Shown one piece after another: positions 1,723 to 62,474 of a stretch of 64,000 nucleotides of DNA. The stretch is from Diplonema japonicum. Lineage: Eukaryota; Protista; Euglenozoa: Diplonemea. Each line of letters opens with the position of its first letter. Positions within the stretch are counted from its first letter, which is position 1. The notes below the pieces were generated by a model that was not told the DNA's origin, ran no database searches, and was given only the letters and a program-made list of their open reading frames with translations. The DNA is taken from assembly GCA_964019335.1 (NCBI GenBank), contig OZ025760.1, forward strand, positions 62,001 through 126,000. The letters are read 5' to 3'. A program made the translations under genes and the position numbers.

Positions 1723-2627
1723 TTCCCCCCCTTTTTTTTTTTTTTTTTCCGTTCCTAAATGTGAATAAAGGGGCGGGAATTTAAAAAAAAAAAAAAAAAA
1801 AAGAGTTTTTGGTAATCAGTGAACAGAGGGTTCTTCTTTGACGCAACATGAGAGGTTGCACAGGGGGTGCCGTGCCTCTTAGTTTTCGGATTTATCTTGC
1901 AACTCCTCATCAAGCAAGGGGGGAAGGGAGGGGGAAGGGGGAGAAGTAAAAATATCGATACATCTTCTTTTTTTTTCTTTTTCTCTTCTTCTGGTGTGAA
2001 GGCGGCCATATGGAAATACGGCTCTTAGATCCCCTGTAAAGAGCGGGAATTTAAAAAAAGAGAAAAAAAAGAGAAAAAAAAAAGCGAAGAGGAGGAGGAA
2101 GGGGGGGGGGGGGGGGGAAACAAAAAGATATCGTCCTTTTTTCTTTTCTTTTTTTTTTTACTTTTACAGTAACAATAATCAACATTAGGGGTTGCGGACA
2201 AATTCAAAAAAAAAAGGAGAAAGGGGGGGGGGAAGAAATAAAAATTTAGCTATTTCACTTTATATTCTTTTCACAACAGTCTTGGAATTTACCCTGTCCA
2301 AGGAGACAAAGAGAGAGAGAGAGAGTAGAGAAAAAAAAAAAAAAAAAAAAACCCCTCCTAGCGTAAAGTTATGTCCCCTCCCAAGTGCATGAACGTAATC
2401 TATCAAAGCGGAAGAAAGGAAAAAAAAAGAGAGAAACGAAAAACGGGGAGAACAAGGAGCAACATTTCTTTCACTCCCTTCCGTCGTTATTTACACAGAA
2501 GTGGGGGGGGGGGGGGGGGGGGTGTTATAGTTTTATGTAATATTGTACGTATTTACAAAAGAAAGGGGGGTGGCGAGGGCGTGCGGTAAATATATATTTG
2601 GCATTATTCTCCCCCCCTTTTTTTATT

Positions 2628-2782: not shown

Positions 2783-3106
2783 TTCCCCGTTCTTAAACAC
2801 ACCCAGTGGTCGACTTCGGGCGTCTCTTCAGCTCTCCCTTCATATCCAACCCGCTACCGATGCACGGGTGCCTGAACACCTTAACTTGACCATGTTCGTC
2901 AGCCGTGGCAAGAAGCGACCCGTTGTGCGACTTCGCCAAGGAGTTGATATCCGATCCATCGGAGTCCTTCGGCCAGATCCCCTGCACGGACCACCCCATG
3001 AAGGAGGTCTGCGTGGCCCAGACCACATCCTTGCTGGCCTCGGGGCTAACGACCTCTGCCTCTGGCACAGAGTAACATGTCAGAACGTAATCCTACAAAA
3101 AAAAAA

Positions 3107-50938: not shown

Positions 50939-52023
50939 TCACCTCCTTTTAATGCATCGATGGTTCAAACTTCTGTTGCGAGAAGATCTTAGCGCGGAGA
51001 CCGCCTGTTATGTTATGCTTTTTTTTTTTTTTTCTTTTTTTTTCCCGACAACACGGGTATGATCCCACGTACCATCCCAGCAAGAGGTTGCGATGTAGAT
51101 GAGATGCTGCTGTGCCGGGCTTTCGCACGCTGCTTTGCTCCCCCCCGGGGTGCTGAGGTGGCGGTGAGTGGCACCGCAGGGGGTGAAGACCGAGGATGAG
51201 AATGAGGATGAGGATGAGGGGGCTGAAACTCAAACATGTCCCGAATAGCATTCAATGCCGACGAATCCATCTCTTCAACAGGCACGACACTTGAGGACCA
51301 AATCGGGGTAATAGGCGGAGATGAAGGCGACCGACCCTGCCAAGACATCTGATGCGAAAGCGTGTTAGCCTTCGCAGGGGGTGATGAAGGCGGCGGTGGT
51401 GTCCGCGGCTCCCTTGTTTTCACCCATTCCCGGATCTGCTTGGACAGCTCCACCGCAGGGATGAGTTCCAACGATTTAAGCGGGAGATTCGTCAAAGGAG
51501 ACGTCGGGCAGGACTCGAACGAGTGAAACCATTCCTCGATCGCTCTCTTCTCGTAAAAATGACCATCCGATGTCTGTACCGGCACACGCATGATCCCGCA
51601 AGTGATGGGGCAGAGGTACTCCTGCGGCGCTTCATCGGAGTAGAGATCCCATTGGTCAGCAAACTCAGGGAGTTTTGCCACGGGTCTCTGAGGTTGCACA
51701 TCGTCATCAATGCCAAGCCCTGGTAGAGCATCTGTGATGTCCATAGAGCTTTCCTCCACGGCAAGGGACAGAGCGAAGAGCCTCCTTCGCAGCTCACACG
51801 CAGACTGTAGTTTTTCCCTCACATCCCGCAGCCTCACCGTCAGTGCCGCTGCGCGTGTTACTAAGTTCTCCGCCTCGACCCTCTCCCGTTGGTATTCTGA
51901 CAGCCTCCCTGCTATCCTGCTTTGCATCACCTCCAGTTCCCTTGTCAGGTGCCGCAGCCGGTTCGACCGCTGCCCGAACCTATGCATGCTGCTGTTATTT
52001 GTCTGTTTCATGTAATTTGCCAT
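50939..52023 (-). CDS. U-box E3 ubiquitin ligase
   Basis: PQEYLCPITCGIMRVPV..DGHFYEKRAIEEW..TSPLTN. Probable terminal intron 51005-51072; unspliced, the ORF stops at 51013. Confidence 0.85.
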
Positions 52024-52217
52024 TTCCCACCTCTTTTTTACCCCCTCCCTGTAGTGTTTTGTTGTTGTTGATGCGGGAGTAGGAAAAAAGATTTGCTTTT
52101 AAGTCTTACCCTCTTCCCCCCCCCGTTTTTAAGGGGGGGGGAGAGGAGGGGGGATTGGTGATGGTGATGTTCTTTCTCTCTCTCGTTTTCTCAAAAAAAA
52201 AAAACTCCTTCTTTCTC

Positions 52218-55200
52218 TCATTCGGTGGCACATCTCTCTCTCACCCACTCAGCAACGTTTTCCATGAGCCCGCCAGTCTGTGGGATACCGTGCCCACCGA
52301 CGTGCTCGATTTTCTTAGTGTTCCTTTGATTGAGTTGTTGGCAGGCATGGTAGGTTGCGAGGCACGACTCGCCTAGTGGCTCGTTCGGGTCGAAAACATG
52401 AAGTGTCGGGGAAGGGGTAGGGGGGGTGTGGGGTGCGATGGTGCTGAACAGTACCCCCCAGGAGGCAAGGGATGCGGTGAGGATGTGGCTGGCCATGGCG
52501 GCTCCTTGGGAGAAACCCAGAACACCGTCGAATGGCCCGTGGGTAGAAGCCAGCAAAGAGAGAAGCTGTTCGCTTTCGTCGAGACCTTCTTTGTCTGTCC
52601 CGTCCCAGCCATCTGAGAAACTCCTAACTCCGCTTTGTTCCTTACTCGGACAAGACCACCATTCATAGCTGTCTATCTCTTCAGGCACGTCAGGGTCACC
52701 AGGCCCCTTCCCGATTTGCGGTGCATCTATAAATACAAGCTCGCATCCTGCCTTCGTCAGAGTTTCCACTTGCGACAATAGAACTTGTTTGTTGGTGCGG
52801 AACCCGTGCAAACACAATATCTTGCACTTTCTTTCTGTCCTGCTTGCGATGGTCAACACATCTCCGTCGTCCCTCTTCTTCAGCGAGATCGACTTGGCCA
52901 CCGTCCTCACAGTCGCAGCGTCGTAGAGTTCAACGTTGGGCAGCCCCAGCTCCGTACGTATCGCGTGTGCTAATTGCAGCTGGGACAGGGAATCGAACCC
53001 GAGGCTTGCCAACCCCGCGTCTATGTCAACTTCTTCGTGTCGAAGCTTGAGCCTACCTGAGACATGTTTAAGCAACACCTCCATTGCCCGCTCTTTGGAG
53101 ACCCCTTCAGACGGCTTCTCATCCTGCTTTTCAAGAACGATCCATTTGAGTTTCCTTCGGACGAGCTTGCCAAGCGTGATACCGCTCACTCCCTCGATCT
53201 CCACACAGACCATGACGAAGCTAAGGTTCTCATTTGTCGCGACGCTCCTTGCAACAGCTGCCCACATACTCGCGCAGACTGTTGGCCCTATTAAAACAAC
53301 AACAGTAGGGGTCGTGGCTTGCGGTATGGCTTGCACCTCGGTGAGCACTACAACATGACAAGTTTGGGCTATCCGCGCAATGTCCTCAGCAATGGGACGA
53401 AGCTCCAGAGGGGACGTGATCTTTGTTGTCTCGCTGGAGGGGGCAGCTGCCGACACGTTGGGTTTGATAAGAACCTTGCCGATGTGCTTTCCTTTGTTGA
53501 GGAAGTCTAGAGCGTCCACGGCGGACTCGATGGGGTACGTCACTGAGGGCAGGGCGGGGAGGTCATTGCCAAGACAGTAGTCCCATGTTTCTTTCAGAAG
53601 TTTCGAGCCTAAGGATGGTTGGAGAAGGAGGACATCAAGGTGAGCAGACATGTACTGCTGTCCCATCGAAAACAGGTTCAGGTCCAGGTTGGTGTGGTCC
53701 TGCTGGTCGCGTTTGCCAAGTTCCACGAACTTCCCGAAGGGCTTCAAGAGGGATATCGAGGTCTTCAAGGCTTCGTCAGAGAGAGAGTTGACTACGACGT
53801 CGACACCCTCCCCAGCGGTGGTCTCCATGACCCCTTGGTGGAAGGCGGTGTAGCTACGGGAGTTGAAGATGTTCTTTGGGTCCACCCCGCAGGTCTCTAC
53901 CAAGAACTGTCGCTTCTCGGAGGTCGAACAGGTGCAAAGCGGGATCCCACCCATCTTCAAGACTAAACGAACGCACGCTTGGCCTACGCCGCCTGCAGCA
54001 GCGTGGATGAGCACCGTGTCGCCAGGCTGGACCTTCGCAAGCCATTTCACAGCAAGCCATGCTGTGCCGTACGCTAGTGAGATTGTTGAAGCATGCTCTA
54101 AAGATGTGCCTTGCGGAACCTTGACGCACCTGTGGGTAGGGAGTACTGCGTGGCTTCCAAGGCCGCCTTTCAGTGGCAGTCCTGCTGCACGGTCTCCTAC
54201 TTTGAAATCAGTAACGGACTCTCCCACTGCCACCACTGTTCCACAGCACTCGCCGCCCACCTCTCCAAGTCTTGCTGCGGACATCACACCAGATGCTAGA
54301 AGGACGTCCAAGAAATTCAGCGCCCACATCTCCGTGCGTATCAGAACCTCGTTGGGGTCGAACGCTGGCGGGGAAACGGGGACTGTTTCGGTTTCGAACC
54401 CAGCAGCACCTCCCTTCACCAGCACCTTGTATCCTTCCTTCGCAGTCGTGTCGCCTTCGCCTTCTTCGACTGGGGAGACCTTTGGAGCTTCACACTCACC
54501 GTCCGCTGTGATCCTCAAAAAATCTGGAAGACTCGAATCCAAGCCGGCCAATGCTGCGACATGTTTGAAAGACTCGGCTTGGTTGTTGATGTAGGTTGTT
54601 TGCCATTCCGGTGGAAGGACGCTTTGGCAGGCTAAGCTGAGAACAGATGTCCCGTAGTCAACGTGAGACGATAAGGGCACGGTGTCACCCTGGAGGTCCT
54701 TGAGGAGAACGAGAGCGTCGAGAAGCAGACCTTCAGGGATGCGATCGTGAACGGTTGTCGTAGGAGGGAAGCAGTCCGCAACGTCTTGTGAGAAGGGTAC
54801 AACGGCCACGTTCATGGAACGGTTCCGCACCGCTTTCGCAACGGAAAAGGGCGCGAGCACCATCTGCTTCACAACAGGAGCATCCTGCAAAGGAGTCACC
54901 ACCTCGAACCCAGTCACATATCCCACCATATCAGGTCCCTTGATGACAAGGTCAAGCCTGCCATCTGCAGACCGTGTGCTTGCAGTGGTTGTGAATGTGT
55001 CAGATAGGATGCTCCCCTTTGTCTTCTTGATTATCGTGAAGGATTCCAGCCTATAAGGCAGCCCGTTCCCTCCAATGAGCGACGCCACTTGAGTGCACGC
55101 ATCGATCGTGGCGGGGCTGTACCCGCAGTAGCTTCCATTGTCAACTTTTGCTTCCACCTCAGCAGTGAGCCTCTTCCCGTCGTCGCACGTTTCGATTTTG

Positions 55201-58200
55201 GTCACGGCTCTGAAAGGGCCTAGGTATTCGAACCCAGCCGACGCCATTTTTTCGTAAAGCGTGGCAGGCTTAAGCAGCTTTCTATCCTCGTTGTTGTTCG
55301 ATATGTTTATTAAAGGAGCGACTCCTGGGCTGTGTGCAACCCATGCTTCGGCGTGAACCCGCATTTTCCCTTCATTGTTGAAGTCCTGACTCGACACCAT
55401 GACCCTCCAGTTCTTCAAAGTCGTGTCCACTGTCGTGACCACTTCTCTTGACGTGTGGCTGCCCTTCGCAGCTGTCATCTCCAGCGTGCTTCTGAACCTC
55501 ACCCCCGTGAGGGTCACGCTGTCTCCCTCGCCTTGCCGCACCGCGTCCACAGCCGACACCATCATCTCCAGCCACATGGTGGCGGGCACCACCATCGCCC
55601 CGCTGATTTTATGCCCCGTAAGATACCCCACCCCAGCTTGATGCCACTCGATAGGGTCCATCGAGGTCGGCCACAGTGTGGTACAATTGTACGTTCCGGG
55701 GTGTGTTGACTCACTCGGATGTCCGATCACCGGCTCGGACCTGACGGGGATGATGTTCTTGACGAGGTTAAAGGGAAGTTGAAGTGCTCGCGTGTAGGCC
55801 GGCCAAGACACAATCTTGTTGAACATTACCACAGGGGACAACGGGGATAAAAGATTCTCACGCGTGAAGAACCTGACAGCCTCCGAGGGTGTGAAGAAGG
55901 ACTCGCCGGATAAGGGGTTGATGTTAAAAGCTTCGGACATCCCCACCGTCCAGCCTCCCCATTGGACTGCCTTGACGAGGAGGCCGTTGCGGATGTAATG
56001 CACGGCAGAGGCATCAGTGAAGGCGTTGGCAGCAGAGTAGATGGACTGCCCGGGGGGTCCAAGGACAGAGCTTGACGAGGAAGTCAAAAAAACAACGGTT
56101 TTTGAGGATTTCCGTGCCACTGCTCCGACTAAGTTTTGCACACCGTGCATCTTCGCCCCCACCGCATCCCGAATACCAGCCTGCTTGACGTTCCCAATGG
56201 TCATGTCTGACACTACACCAGCACAGTGGAAAACATACGAAATCTCCCCCGTTACCTCTTCTACAACCTTCGCTGTCCGTTCCTTGTCCATGACATCGCA
56301 TTGCATGTACCGTACGCCGTGTTCTTGGTCTTTCTGTGCAGGTGGTCGGCGGGAAAGGGCGATCGGGTTCCCTTTGGCGTCTCTCACCCATTTTGCAATG
56401 GACAGGCCAATACCCTTCGACCCTCCTGTTATAAGCACGGTCTTGCCCGTCACGTCCAGCGGGGTTTGCTTCTCTTTGAACGGTGTTCGAACGAGCCTCG
56501 AGGCTGCCCATGTGCCTTCCTCACTCAGCGTTACTTCCTCGTCGGTGTATACTCTATGGACGGCATTGTCGATTCTTGATTCTTGTCCCTTTAGGATGAC
56601 CCTCCTTGTTTTGACATTTGGCACTTCTCTTGCAACGCTTCTGAAAAAGCCCAGTAAAGTAGACCCGCCCACACCTTCTCTTACCAGAAGGAGGATCTCC
56701 TTCAGGGCTTTTTCCTTGACGACATGCTGGACCACCTCCACGACCTCCTTCAGGACGTTGAGGTTGGCCTCCGCTTCGACTTCTTCTCCCAACCACACCA
56801 TCAGAAGCCTGCCGTGTTTCTTCACCCCCTTGACGACAGTCTCGATGTCCCTGCACGGCATTACTCCCTCCGCAGCCTTGTGCTTTGCGTTCTGCACGTA
56901 CCAACAAGGCCATAAAGAGGTTGGGCATTGACGCGGGGAAGGGATGGTGAGGTATTCGTGCGTGTAAACATGCGAGTGGACTGGCTGCTCGGTTCTCGGC
57001 AACAATGTTTTTTGTTTTTTACTGTGGGGCATCGCAGCGCTGCTCTCCGGCCAGCATTTCTCTCTCGCATATGGTACAGGCGGGACCCAAGTACACGGCA
57101 CCTCCGAGGTTCCCTTCCATGCCTTGTGCTTCGCAGCAAGCGCTTTCTTCCAGTCAACACCCGCACCGTGCTGCCAAGCAAGGGACAAACCGTCCCAGAG
57201 AACCTGCTCCTCTTGCGATGGGACGCTCTTCAGAGGCTTCGCCATCAAAGGGCACACAGGAACGCCGTCGCCTGCTTCCTTGATACAAGATGTGAGCAGC
57301 TGCGGGCCTGCCTCAAGAACAACGAACGGACGGAAGTCTTGAGAGATGGAAGCAACGGCCTGCGTGAAGTTCACAGGCAAGCGCATGTGGGTAGACCAGT
57401 ACTCAACAGACGTAGCCTGGTCGGGGGTGATACGCAAACCTGTGACAGTTGAGTAAAGAGGGATCTTTGGAGGGGAAAGCGTCAGGTCTTGAAGGACCGA
57501 ACGGATGTAAGGGATGCCAGGGTCGACGGAGGAGGAGTGGAAGGCCGCGTCTGTGGGGATGCGTTTCGGTACCCATTCGGGTTTGTCCTTCTCAATGGTT
57601 TCCAGCTCGTCGAAGGAACCAGAGATCACGCTGCGAGAAGGAGAGTTCAGACAGGCGATCTCGAGGGTATTCTTGCCTTTCAGGCACGGTGCGATCTCGT
57701 CCTTCCCTGCCATGACAGAGACCATGCCGCCTTTGTTCTTTTTTACGAGTTCATCGATGACGTGCCCGCGTGCTTGTACGAATTTGACTGCATCCTTCAG
57801 CGTGAAGACCCCTGCAACTGTTGCCGCGGTGACCTCTCCCAGTGAGTGCCCGACCACTGCAGAGATCCGCACCCCGAATACCTGTGCCACCACCTTGGCC
57901 AAGCTGTATCCTACGGCGAACAGCAACACCTGCGTACCTGCGTTGTTCCTCGGGTTGCATATCTCTATTCCAGCTACTTCTTCCACGCCCTTGAAATACT
58001 TTTTAAACAGTGGAAGCGTCTTAGCATTCTTAAGCCCCTCGCAAAGCCCGTTCGACAGCCCGCCCTGCCCTGGAAATGAAAGCACCGTGGGTACGTTCTT
58101 ATCGCTCAGGCTTTTTACCGGGTGGTGGCCCACGGAGGTCGACACGCGGTACTTGAAAGCGTTCCGTTCGGACAGCGTTTTTTCAATGTTCAGAACGGCG

Positions 58201-61200
58201 GTCGGCTCGGACTTCGCAAAGGATGCAATTTCAGAAGCAGACTGCACGGCCGCCGGTCTGGACTTAGCTGAGATCAAGAACGTTGCGGGGTACCCCACCG
58301 TCTCGACAGGAGCCGCTGGGACAGGGTCATACCCCTCACATATGAGATGCACATTAGTGCCACCTACACCGAAGCTGGACACGCCACAACGTCGGTGACC
58401 TGTCCACGGGGCCAGGACAGTTTGGATGGAGAGAGGATGCGTGATTTCGGAGATGGGATGGGAGTGATTCGCGGTGGGGACCAGTGCTTTGTGGTGAAGA
58501 CACAGAATTGCCTTTAAAAGCCCTGCTGCACCGGCAGCAGTGTTTGCATGCCCTATGTGGCCCTTCACAGACCCAAGGGACAAGGGTGTTTTCCGACTGC
58601 CGTATGTGTCGAGCAGCGCCGCGATCTCGATAGGGTCGCCGACTGCGGTGCCCGTCCCGTGGCCTTCGATCATCGACACGGTGGAGGGATCGACCCCAGC
58701 GTCGTGCAGGCATTTCGTGATGGCGTCGACCTGCCCGCTGCGGGAGGGGGAGTTGTAACTGTGCTTCCGCTTCCCGTCGTTAGCAACGCCGCACCCGAGA
58801 ACCACAGCGTAGATACGGTCACCGTCACGCTCTGCATCGTCTAAAGGTTTCAAGGTGAAGGCGACACCAGCACTGCTAGGCAACGTGCCCGTGCCTGAAG
58901 AGTCATACGGACGGCAACGACCATCTACAGACCACACCATGCCAGGCTGATGGAGGTATCCTGTGTCCTGCGGGAGCTGGATCGAAACTGACGCAGCGAC
59001 AGCCTTCTTGCACTCTCCCGACCGCAACGCAGCAACAGCCGCTGCAACGCACGACAGCCCGCTACTGCACGCAGTCTGGATGGTCTGAGAAGGGCCGTGC
59101 AGGTCTAGGAGGTACGACACCCTTGTAGCACAGTAGTCTTTATCGTTACCCACTTCCAACGCCCAGTACTTAGCGGGATCGTCAACCCTGCACTCCATGG
59201 TGTCCTCTTGTAAGACGTCTGTTAGGTATTGCGGGAGGGAAGACCCCGAAGCGTACACCCCAACGCTCTTCTCCCCAGGCGGCCCCGAGTCGGCCAGGGA
59301 TTCCCTGCATAACTCAAGCAAGACGCGTTGGTTTGGGTCCGTGATAATGGCTTCTTGTTTCGACATTGACCAGAACTCCGGGTCGAAGCCAGTGATGTGC
59401 TCGTCAGGGAGGAGTATGCCGCGTGCTACGTAATCAGGGTTGCCCGCCATGTGCTGGGGTGGGGTGACATCCGTAGAGAGGTCGGAAGTGGTTTGGAGGC
59501 TCTCCCACACGCAGGGAAGGAGGTGCCCGTTGTCAGTGGGCCACCTGACCCCGATCCCTACGACAGCGATCTTCTTGTTCAGCGAGGCGGGGCTGCGGAT
59601 GCTGGGGACCGAAGCGTGCTTTTTCCCGTTGTCAATGAAGCGTGCCTGCTCCTCGATCGTCGACAGCTCGATGAGATCCGCCACACGGAGCGACAAGATC
59701 TGCGACAGCCTTGTTATAGTCAGAGAGTGCGCTCCTATGTCATACATCGATGTTTGTTCAGGACACGATACTGCGGGGTCACCAAGAAGCTCGACCCACG
59801 CAGCACGCACACGGCTGGACGTCAATTCACTGTTGTTACCATTAGGAGCCGAGATGAGTCGGGTCTGAGGAATGCCGACCTTTGCATCAACAGGGACACC
59901 GGTCTTGTACCATGTTAGAAGGACCCTCGAGTCGAGCTTTCCGGTAGGTGTAACAGGGAACCGGTTGATGAACACCAATGTTGTCGGGTAATGGCTGGAA
60001 GGGAGGTCTGTCTCCTTCAAATGCTCCGCCAAGGCGGACGCTGTGGGGTTGCTCTCCAGTGTAACGTCGAGGTTCACCTTCAAAAAGCCGATCAAACAGT
60101 CGTTTGCAACGAGGGGGACGCCGTCGAGGATCTCGGTTCGAAATATCTTTTCAGGGATCTTCTTGAGGTGTTTTTGTATCGCACCGAGGTCGATCCGGAA
60201 CCCGCGTACCTTGGCCGTCTGGTTCAGCCGTCCCGCGATCCCGTAGATCTGCGCTTTCCCGTGGTACTGCGTGCTTCTGAAACAGCCTCGAAGAAGGTCC
60301 CCTCCGAGCTTATCAATGTCGAATGTTACAAGCGAGTCCTTTGTGAACCATGTAGGGGTTCCTTCATATGTTCCAAATGAATCTGAAGCTGTTGGATCGC
60401 CCAAGTAAGTAGTGCCTTCGGGTACACCGGAACCACTCACACCCAGCTCTTTCAAACCCGTGTCTTTGTAAGGAATGGGCCTGACGGAGACGGTGGGGAG
60501 GGGGAGCCCGACAGGCGCGTACTGCAGCTCCGGAAGGCGGTCGGAGATGATCGACGTGATTTGAGGAGTCAGTTCGAATGTACACACGTCGCCTGCTTCT
60601 GTTGTTGATAAAAGGTTCAAAATCAGCGTATCAGGTAGTTTATCGTGAACCAGTTTTAAGGTGTCAATCGGCAACGGTTCACCGGAGAGAACCGCGATTC
60701 GCAAAATCCCGCCGATTCTGGCGATGGACGCGTCTTGCGAAAGAGCGCGGAGAAGCGACGGTGAGAAACAATCGATCCTGGTGATCCCGACCTTCTCGAT
60801 GAGCGTGATAAGCAAACCGGAATCGATGATACTTGAGTCTGGGATTAAACAGGTGGGGCGGCCCCGTGCCATGCCCATCCACCAGTACCACAGCGGAAAC
60901 ATATTAACGCCGATGATATCTGTATCGTCCATTGGGTAATATTTTTCACGGAAGGAGAGCATGTTGGAAAGGTGCAAGTGGTTCATGATGACACCTTTTG
61001 GTTTACCTGTTGACGTGCCGGTGGTCCAATCGACGAAGGCGGGCGTGGAGGGTGTAATATGCGGTAAGTGGTCGATGGAGAGCTTCGGGTTTTCCGTTTT
61101 GCAAATTTCGTCTATCTCAAGAATCGGGACTGTAGTGTGTCTGTCGGCATCGACGTCAGATCTGCTCCCGTAGATTAGGAACTTGGGGTCCCATGTTTTC

Positions 61201-61480
61201 CATATATGCTCCCGTTGTGGTTCTCCTAACCTTAAGTCCACCACGGTGAACGGTGCTCCCTTCAAAGAACAGGCTAAGCATCCTATCACCCACCGTTTTC
61301 CCTTCCCCACGCAGAGGGCTCCCCGCGCCCCGTTCGGGATCATCTCCGCAACCTGTAGCGCGGCATTTATCAACTCCTTGAACGTCATCGTCTCTGCCTC
61401 GTTTCCATAATACAGTGCCGGGTCGTCCGGTGTCAGGCGGTAGCGTTCTAATATCAGTGTGGGGAAAGGTTTGATGTCCA

Positions 61481-61481
<1 letters not shown>
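52218..61481 (-). CDS. Hybrid NRPS-PKS megasynthase A-T-KS-AT-KR-DH-ER-ACP-FSH1 hydrolase (3087 aa, intronless)
   Basis: A: TTGTSTGKPKG, GRLNQTAKVRGFRIDL, TGKLD. T: GAHSL. KS: TACSS, HGTGT, GHANTAAG. AT: GHSLGE, AFHS. KR: TGGSKGIG, YSAAN. DH: HKISGAMVVP, DACTQ. ER: LNFLD, HAAAGGVG. ACP: GFDSL. FSH1: LCLHG, GFSQG, GGH. Confidence 0.95.
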
Positions 61482-61511
<30 letters not shown>

Positions 61512-62003
61512 AATACCCCTTTCTCCCCCCCTTTCTTTTTTTTTTTTGCAAACCTGAGGGGGGGGAAAAAAAAAGAAAAAAAAATTCTCCGCCATGTTTT
61601 TTGTTATCCACTTCTTCATATCAACAAATGTTGTTTTTGAGAATCGCTCCACGGCTGAGAGGGCAAATCAGAAGAAATGGCCCTCCCCCTCAGCCCTTGC
61701 GACACTGGATGGGGTGTTAATTCTCGGAGACGGTAATGTCCCAATTGGGGTTGAGGAGAGACTTCTCTGCGCTGCGATGAAGAATTATAAGAAGAAACCC
61801 GAAGGAAAAAATAAAAAATAAAAAAAAAATACTGAACGAAATAAGTAGTATAAAAAAAAAAAAAGAATCCAACCACCCCCCCCCCCCCCCCCCCCGCACC
61901 TCCTACTAATCTCTCTTCAGAGATTTTTCTTTCTCTTCTTTTTTTTTTTCTTTTTTTTTTGTATCTATTTTTTTTTTTTTTTTTTGTATATCCCCCCTGT
62001 CTT

Positions 62004-62474
62004 TCACACGCTTTCCTCAGGCTGGACATGAACAAGAGATGTGTGAGGCATGGAAGTAGCTTTTGCATTAGGGTCTGGGAGGCCTAGCCTGCGTCTCTCC
62101 TTAGCGCGCTCCTCAAGGAGCTTCTTCTTGATATATGCCTCTTTCTTGGTCTTTCTAGCCAGCTGTCTATCATGCTCATCAATAGCGTATTGAAATCTAC
62201 TCTGAGTGATACCCAAGGCGTCCGCTACTTTCTCTCCCAGGTAATCGGCTGTTGCATACATTTGATATAATACAGGATACACCGCTCTCCAAGTCTTTTC
62301 TACCACTTCGTACTTAAATGGGACTTCGTACCACTCTGGGCTTGCGCTGTAGTAACCCTCAGCTTCAGGAGTGGGTTCCTCTCGGTCTTTAGCCTCTTCT
62401 TCTATTTGTATTTCTATCTCTGTTTCGTCATCTTTCTCCTCTTCCACCAAGCTTTTGTGCTCCTCTTCGGACAT
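62004..62474 (-). CDS. FAM177-family protein
   Basis: DYLGEKVADALGITQSRFQYAIDE matches the FAM177 signature. Confidence 0.8.
   Translation of the reverse strand: MSEEEHKSLVEEEKDDETEIEIQIEEEAKDREEPTPEAEGYYSASPEWYEVPFKYEVVEKTWRAVYPVLYQMYATADYLGEKVADALGITQSRFQYAIDEHDRQLARKTKKEAYIKKKLLEERAKERRRLGLPDPNAKATSMPHTSLVHVQPEESV

Follow-up and report, generated by a model that had tools for sequence, protein, structure and literature searches.

The 64,000-nucleotide stretch of Diplonema japonicum (Euglenozoa: Diplonemea) analyzed here, positions 62,001 to 126,000 of contig OZ025760.1 (assembly GCA_964019335.1), is hereafter called the window, and nucleotide positions refer to it unless another locus is named. 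It carries on the minus strand a gene for a hybrid of nonribosomal peptide synthetase (NRPS) and polyketide synthase (PKS) parts. The open frame spans 52218..61652 (3144 codons), and its first ATG, at 61481, gives a protein of 3087 amino acids (aa) followed by a stop codon, with no intron (52218-61481). Pfam orders the domains as adenylation (A), carrier (T), ketosynthase (KS), acyltransferase (AT), ketoreductase (KR), dehydratase (DH), enoylreductase (ER), acyl carrier protein (ACP) and FSH1 hydrolase. An initial annotation, made from the letters alone, had described one intronless open reading frame (ORF) with this order. Pfam confirms that description on the 3087-aa frame, and the domain coordinates then given agree with the present limits to within about 100 bases.

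Domain layout, integrity and spread of the gene

The start codon is supported by homologues, residue 3 of the query pairing with residue 9 of the Diplonema papillatum protein P0002. The intergenic sequence upstream of the gene (61482-62010) contains long homopolymer runs (A, T, G run of ~25), and the in-frame GTG extension of the ORF through it is non-coding. The features of the coding sequence are listed in Table 1. Pfam matches cover AMP-binding at aa 15-334 (5e-29), PP-binding in two stretches (near 554-625 and at 2802-2863), KS at 636-1005 (9e-40 and 2e-36) plus a C-terminal extension, AT at 1183-1404 (2e-29) and FSH1 at 2884-3069 (PF03959; 2e-20, 73.8 bits against a cut-off of 21). As previously stated, there is no condensation domain, PF00668 having no match at E<=0.01 in the 3087-aa protein. 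The NRPS contribution is confined to A and T, short of a complete NRPS module.

Table 1 Features of the hybrid NRPS-PKS gene and the evidence on which each is delimited
Feature	Residues (aa)	Motifs and residues	Position in window	Strand	Basis
Whole coding sequence	3087 + stop		52218..61481	minus	ORF, Pfam; contigs of three studies
Adenylation domain	10-547	cores intact	59841..61454	minus	Pfam, family HMM, alignment, tree
Carrier domain T1	554-625	DIGAHSL, Ser586	59607..59822	minus	Pfam, family alignment/HMM
Ketosynthase	634-1063	Cys805/His941/His978; GNDKDY at 778-783	58293..59582	minus	Pfam, alignment, KS tree
Acyltransferase	1130-1420	GHSLGE, Ser1213, AAFH	57222..58094	minus	Pfam, alignment
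Post-AT linker and alpha/beta region	~1570-1665 (alpha/beta region)		56457..57041	minus	low-confidence AlphaFold2, ClbB alignment
Ketoreductase, catalytic part	1676-1870	TGGSKGIG, Lys1777/Tyr1815/Asn1819	55872..56456	minus	Pfam, alignment
Dehydratase	1935-2215	HxxxGxxxxP His1957, GFEYLGPF, DACTQ Asp2127	54837..55679	minus	Pfam, alignment
DH-ER linker, poorly conserved, predicted disordered	2216-2359		54405..54836	minus	AlphaFold2 pLDDT <35, alignment
Enoylreductase	2360-2683	HAAAGGVGQA NADPH site	53433..54404	minus	Pfam, alignment
Acyl carrier protein	2795-2870	LGFDSL, Ser2831	52872..53099	minus	Pfam, alignment
FSH1 serine hydrolase	2882-3080	GFSQG Ser2991/Asp3031/His3064	52242..52838	minus	Pfam, 1YCD match, alignment

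The catalytic motifs, previously noted as intact, are present and invariant in an alignment of seven family members. The A-domain cores A3, A5, A7, A8 and A10 are all retained, and the motif set of a type I, cis-AT, fully reducing PKS is complete across the seven sequences. The AT motif AAFH is near the malonyl-type HAFH. The KR possesses its NADPH site (TGGSKGIG) and the Lys-Ser-Tyr-Asn residues; its best solved-structure match is EryKR1, and VSD at the position of the LDD motif suggests a B-type KR, the type that feeds dehydratases. The terminal hydrolase matches yeast Fsh1 (1YCD) among solved structures, and its Ser-Asp-His residues are invariant in the alignment; it is presumed to be the release domain. 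Like FSH1/LovG-type hydrolases in general, it passes the Pfam threshold and keeps the catalytic residues, and it differs from them in being fused in cis to the ACP, with an activity that is predicted. LovG, a relative of the FSH1 family, reportedly releases the product of the lovastatin PKS. Together, the domains and motifs support the proposal that this is a self-contained enzyme, which would load, extend, reduce and release its chain.

An AlphaFold2 model of aa 1481-2680, built on a seven-row alignment, served for secondary structure only (predicted local distance difference test, pLDDT, 54.7; predicted template modelling score 0.34). It displays an alpha/beta region ahead of the KR Rossmann fold, a double-hotdog DH, a 175-residue low-confidence DH-ER linker and the ER. 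The alpha/beta region (~aa 1570-1665) is probably the structural subdomain of the KR, and the alignment with Escherichia coli ClbB begins within it, at aa 1607.

The contiguity of the gene was examined in assembled reads. Contigs of three independent studies each cover 52900-58800, from AT to ACP, in one piece with 0 differences, and one of them extends from 51018 to 61509; their library type is not recorded, so that they prove contiguity rather than transcription. An assembly chimera, which the flanking homopolymer tracts could in principle produce by mis-joining, left no positive sign and is contradicted by these contigs. A decaying pseudogene is likewise at odds with 3087 open codons and invariant motifs, and the layout is kept in seven proteins; either explanation can be discounted almost entirely. 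Separately, three short contigs from run X11, possibly RNA, match the 3' part of the gene (52900-54300) at ~97% identity, and therefore a closely related strain or species also carries it.

The same nine-domain layout, A-T-KS-AT-KR-DH-ER-ACP-FSH1 by Pfam, occurs in five other diplonemid proteins, namely P0002 (D. papillatum), P0003 (Lacrimia lanifica transcriptome), P0121 (Sulcionema specki transcriptome), and P0004 and P0005 (both ENA contigs), as well as in one dinoflagellate protein, P0267/P0122 (Hematodinium sp. AKG25415.1). The nearest named protein is PKTS1 of D. papillatum (41-44% identity), and AKG25415.1 aligns over its full length at ~33% identity. At least three relatives therefore transcribe a member of the family, whose range extends from Euglenozoa to dinoflagellates. 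A search of protein representatives with the A-T part returned the five diplonemid relatives followed by multi-A NRPSs, whose summed scores are uninformative about single-A relatives. The corresponding search with the FSH1 part returned family members only, and as a word-index search its blank means little. In the ESM Atlas, only generic fatty-acid synthase (FAS)/PKS clusters were found, with scores <0.9. No report of a diplonemid type I PKS was found in the literature searched.

Order of the reductive domains

In the canonical reducing module, KS-AT-DH-ER-KR-ACP, the KR stands last. In the diplonemid protein, Pfam places the KR at aa 1681-1845 (9e-30), followed by the DH at 1952-2172 and the ER at 2376-2672. 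The KR match is a single stretch, and the 112 residues between ER and ACP contain no Rossmann motif; there is therefore no second KR after the ER, a possibility that the initial annotation had raised against its own reading. To gauge how unusual the order is, 115 bacterial modular PKSs, the best whole-protein matches, were parsed with hidden Markov models (HMMs) built from the family. Their 153 DH-containing modules comprised 40 DH-ER-KR and 113 DH-KR arrangements, with KR last in all and KR first in none (0/153). The KR-first order is genuine and unusual, as had been claimed; it is not unprecedented.

The principal precedent is ClbB of E. coli, which by Pfam has KS-AT-KR-DH-ER-ACP, the order of the diplonemid protein. 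Since clbB of strain CFT073 is annotated as frameshifted, its two open pieces were read separately and not joined: piece 1 contains C-A-T-KS-AT (C, condensation), and piece 2 contains KR (340-511), DH (547-799), ER (850-1142) and ACP (1246-1307). These Pfam coordinates give no hint that the ClbB order is an annotation artefact. ClbB performs one malonyl extension with full reduction of an aminoacyl chain (PMC5490422). The match to the diplonemid protein is collinear, although the two differ in several respects: ClbB has a condensation domain and an alpha-amino-acid A domain with the FDxS loop, lacks a hydrolase domain, has a KS without GNDKDY, works inside a multi-enzyme line, and shows low KR and DH identities to the diplonemid protein. 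A second bacterial case of KR before DH was observed in an Acidobacteriota metagenome-assembled genome (MAG), where L042:20045-25480 encodes a KS-AT-KR-DH-ACP module. Polyunsaturated fatty acid (PUFA) and enediyne synthases likewise have the KR ahead of the DH.

Among eukaryotes, a dinoflagellate 'ZmaK-like' hybrid was described by Williams, Bachvaroff and Place in 2021 from Amphidinium carterae (comp26075_c0_seq1), with A, two T, KS, AT, KR, DH, ER and FSH1 (PMC8283056; also PMC9027781). Compared by description only, it has the same domain content as the diplonemid protein, terminal FSH1 included; its domain order is shown only in a published figure. The diplonemid protein differs in coming from Euglenozoa, and homology to a dinoflagellate member is established through Hematodinium AKG25415.1, which shares the Pfam order and belongs to the family alignment. 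ZmaK-like genes have been stated to be absent from syndinian dinoflagellates (PMC9500876, PMC9027781), which the full nine-domain layout of the Hematodinium protein contradicts.

It follows from these comparisons that the architecture already exists in a characterised bacterial enzyme and that the domain content has already been published for dinoflagellates. The suggestion that the diplonemid protein founds a rearranged class of reducing PKS module without precedent is accordingly very unlikely. In its favor stand the absence of KR-first modules from the 115 bacterial PKSs and the rarity of the string KS-AT-KR-DH-ER in the literature searched, where it occurs in a single paper, the one that led to colibactin ClbB. 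ClbB itself already refutes uniqueness, and the L042 module, the Hematodinium and five other diplonemid proteins, the published dinoflagellate content and the PUFA and enediyne synthases all point the same way.

Adenylation domain and bacterial relatives

Bacterial genomes were scanned with the most conserved peptides of the family, which yielded 80 loci. Scored with family HMMs, the best A domains are those of alphaproteobacterial proteins (132-155 bits, against 48 for ClbB), and the same hybrids lead the T scores and rank near the top for KS (394-413 bits). Their Pfam layout, in L002, L037 and others, is TE-A-T-KS-AT-KR-ACP (TE, thioesterase). They resemble the diplonemid protein in having the nearest A, T and KS domains and a KR directly after the AT. 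They differ in ending at the beta-hydroxy stage, as DH and ER are absent, and in having an N-terminal thioesterase and no C-terminal FSH1.

Two deletions in the A domain are common to the protist family and the bacterial hybrids, and neither is present in canonical A domains, including that of ClbB, in the alignment. The first, of three residues, removes the FDxS loop with the Asp that binds the alpha-amino group (Asp235); the loop reads NMFP---LWYWW in the diplonemid protein and NVFF---VWE in the bacterial hybrids. The second, of six residues, follows core A5 (TTE------AGDV) and precedes a conserved xDV, whose Asp298 in the diplonemid A domain is invariant in the family. Trottmann and co-workers reported both features in BurA-A, which loads dimethylsulfoniopropionate (DMSP), and ATRR-A, which loads betaine: a shorter hydrophobic loop stands in place of the one with Asp235, and the pocket has an acidic residue elsewhere (PMC7496086). 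Compared with that description, the diplonemid A domain, with its shortened loop and invariant Asp298, fits the BurA/ATRR type. BurA itself, the gonyol-forming enzyme of Burkholderia, resembles it in these deletions and the pocket Asp, as judged from the published account.

Phylogenetic trees place the relationship in a wider sample. In the A tree, a branch separates the protist family and the bacterial hybrids from 51 others, with a Shimodaira–Hasegawa-like approximate likelihood ratio support of 80.7. In the KS tree with improved sampling, the family joins the bacterial hybrids at 97, ClbB comes next at 87, and canonical actinobacterial KS domains stand apart at 100. The sister position of the ClbB KS, at 87-97, comes with long-branch warnings, the first KS tree having been flagged and then resampled. 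The KS motif GNDKDY had been taken as typical of KS domains fed by NRPS modules in general; the ClbB KS lacks it, and the motif marks one KS clade. By family HMMs, the ClbB KS, AT and ER outscore all 485, 325 and 49 canonical PKS domains, respectively, and its ER is the top ER scorer, with 30% identity to the diplonemid ER, while its KR and DH rank low. The ER tree falls into three groups and does not place ClbB and the family as sisters or otherwise.

On this evidence, the A, T and KS domains probably share ancestry with the bacterial TE-A-T-KS-AT-KR-ACP hybrids. With moderate confidence, we infer that the starting point was a BurA-like hybrid with a KR as its sole reductive domain, which acquired DH-ER downstream of the KR and exchanged its thioesterase for FSH1. 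Because the KR directly follows the AT in the bacterial hybrids, insertion of DH-ER between KR and ACP, where ClbB also has them, would give the KR-first order without a permutation event and without the canonical DH-ER-KR nesting.

Three alphaproteobacterial loci show a further feature. In L002:8729-17911, and also in L004 and L005, from Hyphomicrobiaceae and other alphaproteobacterial MAGs, the TE-A-T-KS-AT-KR-ACP hybrid is directly followed by a gene for a carnitine/choline O-acyltransferase (PF00755, 555 bits; 59-61% identity between the three loci). Hybrid and acyltransferase may together constitute a thiotemplated, carnitine-type pathway. No link of carnitine or butyrobetaine to a PKS was found in the literature searched.

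Predicted chemistry, genomic setting and significance

The explanation that best accommodates these observations, and that we consider somewhat better than an even bet, is a working single-module hybrid synthase with an onium-type starter, one extension, full reduction and hydrolytic release, whose KR-first order is a product of its history. The A domain, probably of BurA/ATRR type, without the Asp that binds an alpha-amino group and with the pocket Asp kept, would activate an acid bearing a distal positive charge. The starter loaded on T1 would be a betaine or a sulfonium acid, with an omega-amino acid as second choice. The KS would condense it with malonyl-ACP supplied by the AT; the B-type KR, the DH and the ER would reduce the beta-carbon fully; and the fused FSH1 hydrolase would cleave the thioester. 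The product is predicted to be a saturated acid that exceeds the starter by two carbons; a glycine betaine starter would lead to gamma-butyrobetaine, a DMSP starter to 5-dimethylsulfoniopentanoate. Circumstantially, this chemistry fits the O-acyltransferase genes next to the three bacterial hybrids and the presence in the diplonemid genome of a protein with GBBH-like_N and TauD domains, and the phosphopantetheinyl transferases (PPTases) encoded there (three matches, with candidates at G000:C43:302490 and C23:459635) count in favor of a working synthase.

A more specific version would make the whole family one-protein omega-onium acid synthases that convert glycine betaine (or DMSP) and malonyl-CoA into gamma-butyrobetaine (or 5-dimethylsulfoniopentanoate), with the bacterial TE-A-T-KS-AT-KR-ACP relatives making carnitine likewise. 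In that specific form the proposal is doubtful and is offered tentatively.

The identity of the starter is where an ordinary amino acid competes. If the starter were a beta- or omega-amino acid, such as beta-alanine or gamma-aminobutyric acid, the product would be a longer omega-amino acid formed by a ClbB-like extension. A primary amine could be held by the conserved pocket Asp, the better solved-structure matches include beta-aminoacyl-ACP synthetases (7dq5, E 4e-18), and ClbB extends an aminoacyl chain with the same reductive order. The A domain nevertheless clusters with the BurA-like hybrids rather than ClbB, the conserved aromatic LWYWW would fit a cation-pi cage, and carnitine acyltransferase genes adjoin the bacterial relatives, which leaves an amino-acid starter unlikely.

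As to turnover, an iterative, FAS-like module would build long saturated chains on its starter and yield an omega-functionalised lipid instead of a small osmolyte-like acid. Iteration is common among eukaryotic type I PKSs with a single module, and a fatty-acid synthase needs all three of KR, DH and ER. The Hematodinium sequences were not told apart as FAS or PKS by their authors (PMC4802802). Conversely, BurA and ClbB, the nearest analogues that have been characterised, each carry out a single extension, the KS groups with single-pass hybrids, and other large KS-bearing frames in the genome could serve as FAS; we therefore regard iteration as distinctly unlikely.

Several points weigh against the onium-starter synthase favored here. 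The function of every family member is predicted from sequence alone, and the assignment of the A-domain class draws on the published BurA/ATRR description together with the bacterial relatives. The A tree has long protist branches and gives the grouping no more than moderate support. Neither the KR nor the DH shows particular closeness to its counterparts in ClbB or the BurA-like group, and the reductive part appears to have a mosaic, uncertain history. Single versus iterative action of the module is not readable from sequence. The AlphaFold2 model, in which secondary structure is readable, is too poor at its pLDDT for the three-dimensional arrangement of KR, DH and ER. The transcript evidence comes from transcriptomes of relatives, not of D. 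japonicum.

The surroundings of the gene agree with the organization of euglenozoan genomes. Every ORF >200 aa in the window is on the minus strand, a one-strand layout that resembles euglenozoan polycistronic arrays. The neighboring genes encode FAM177, U-box, ankyrin, SNARE and ALAD proteins, and no biosynthetic genes were found among them in the window. The earlier remark that no tailoring genes are nearby thus holds for the neighbors; it says little in a genome whose genes sit in one-strand polycistronic arrays, where the lack of a gene cluster is expected.

Elsewhere in the 62.5 Mb genome, further KS-bearing frames accompany the hybrid PKS and the PPTase matches. A KS match at G000:C96:289717-290439 (minus) lies inside a 21,455-aa open frame, possibly a giant multimodular PKS. 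At G000:C10:393036-394946 (minus), a KS match and a PPTase (ACPS) match fall in a single 4163-aa open frame, an arrangement reminiscent of fungal-type FAS alpha subunits. The GBBH-like_N/TauD protein is encoded by a 425-aa ORF at G000:C12:625249-626523 (L082:1250-2524) and belongs to the gamma-butyrobetaine/trimethyllysine hydroxylase (BBOX/TMLH) family of dioxygenases.

By itself, the domain order is a curiosity with precedents, and with architectural novelty falling away, what remains is a predicted onium-acid chemistry that is specific and readily testable. Paradiplonema papillatum, which carries the orthologue PKTS1, is amenable to genetic manipulation. The family also offers a natural case of a PKS module whose KR, DH and ER stand in reaction order instead of nested. 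Its value lies in the link that it provides among the dinoflagellate 'ZmaK-like' hybrids, their diplonemid counterparts and enzymes of the BurA type, with their sulfonium or betaine acid starters. If the chemistry predicted for the family is correct, gamma-butyrobetaine-like or sulfonium acids would be assembly-line products of dinoflagellates and of abundant marine heterotrophs. Such a thiotemplated, lysine-independent route to a carnitine precursor or to marine zwitterionic osmolytes would bear on carnitine supply and on the pools of these osmolytes in the sea.

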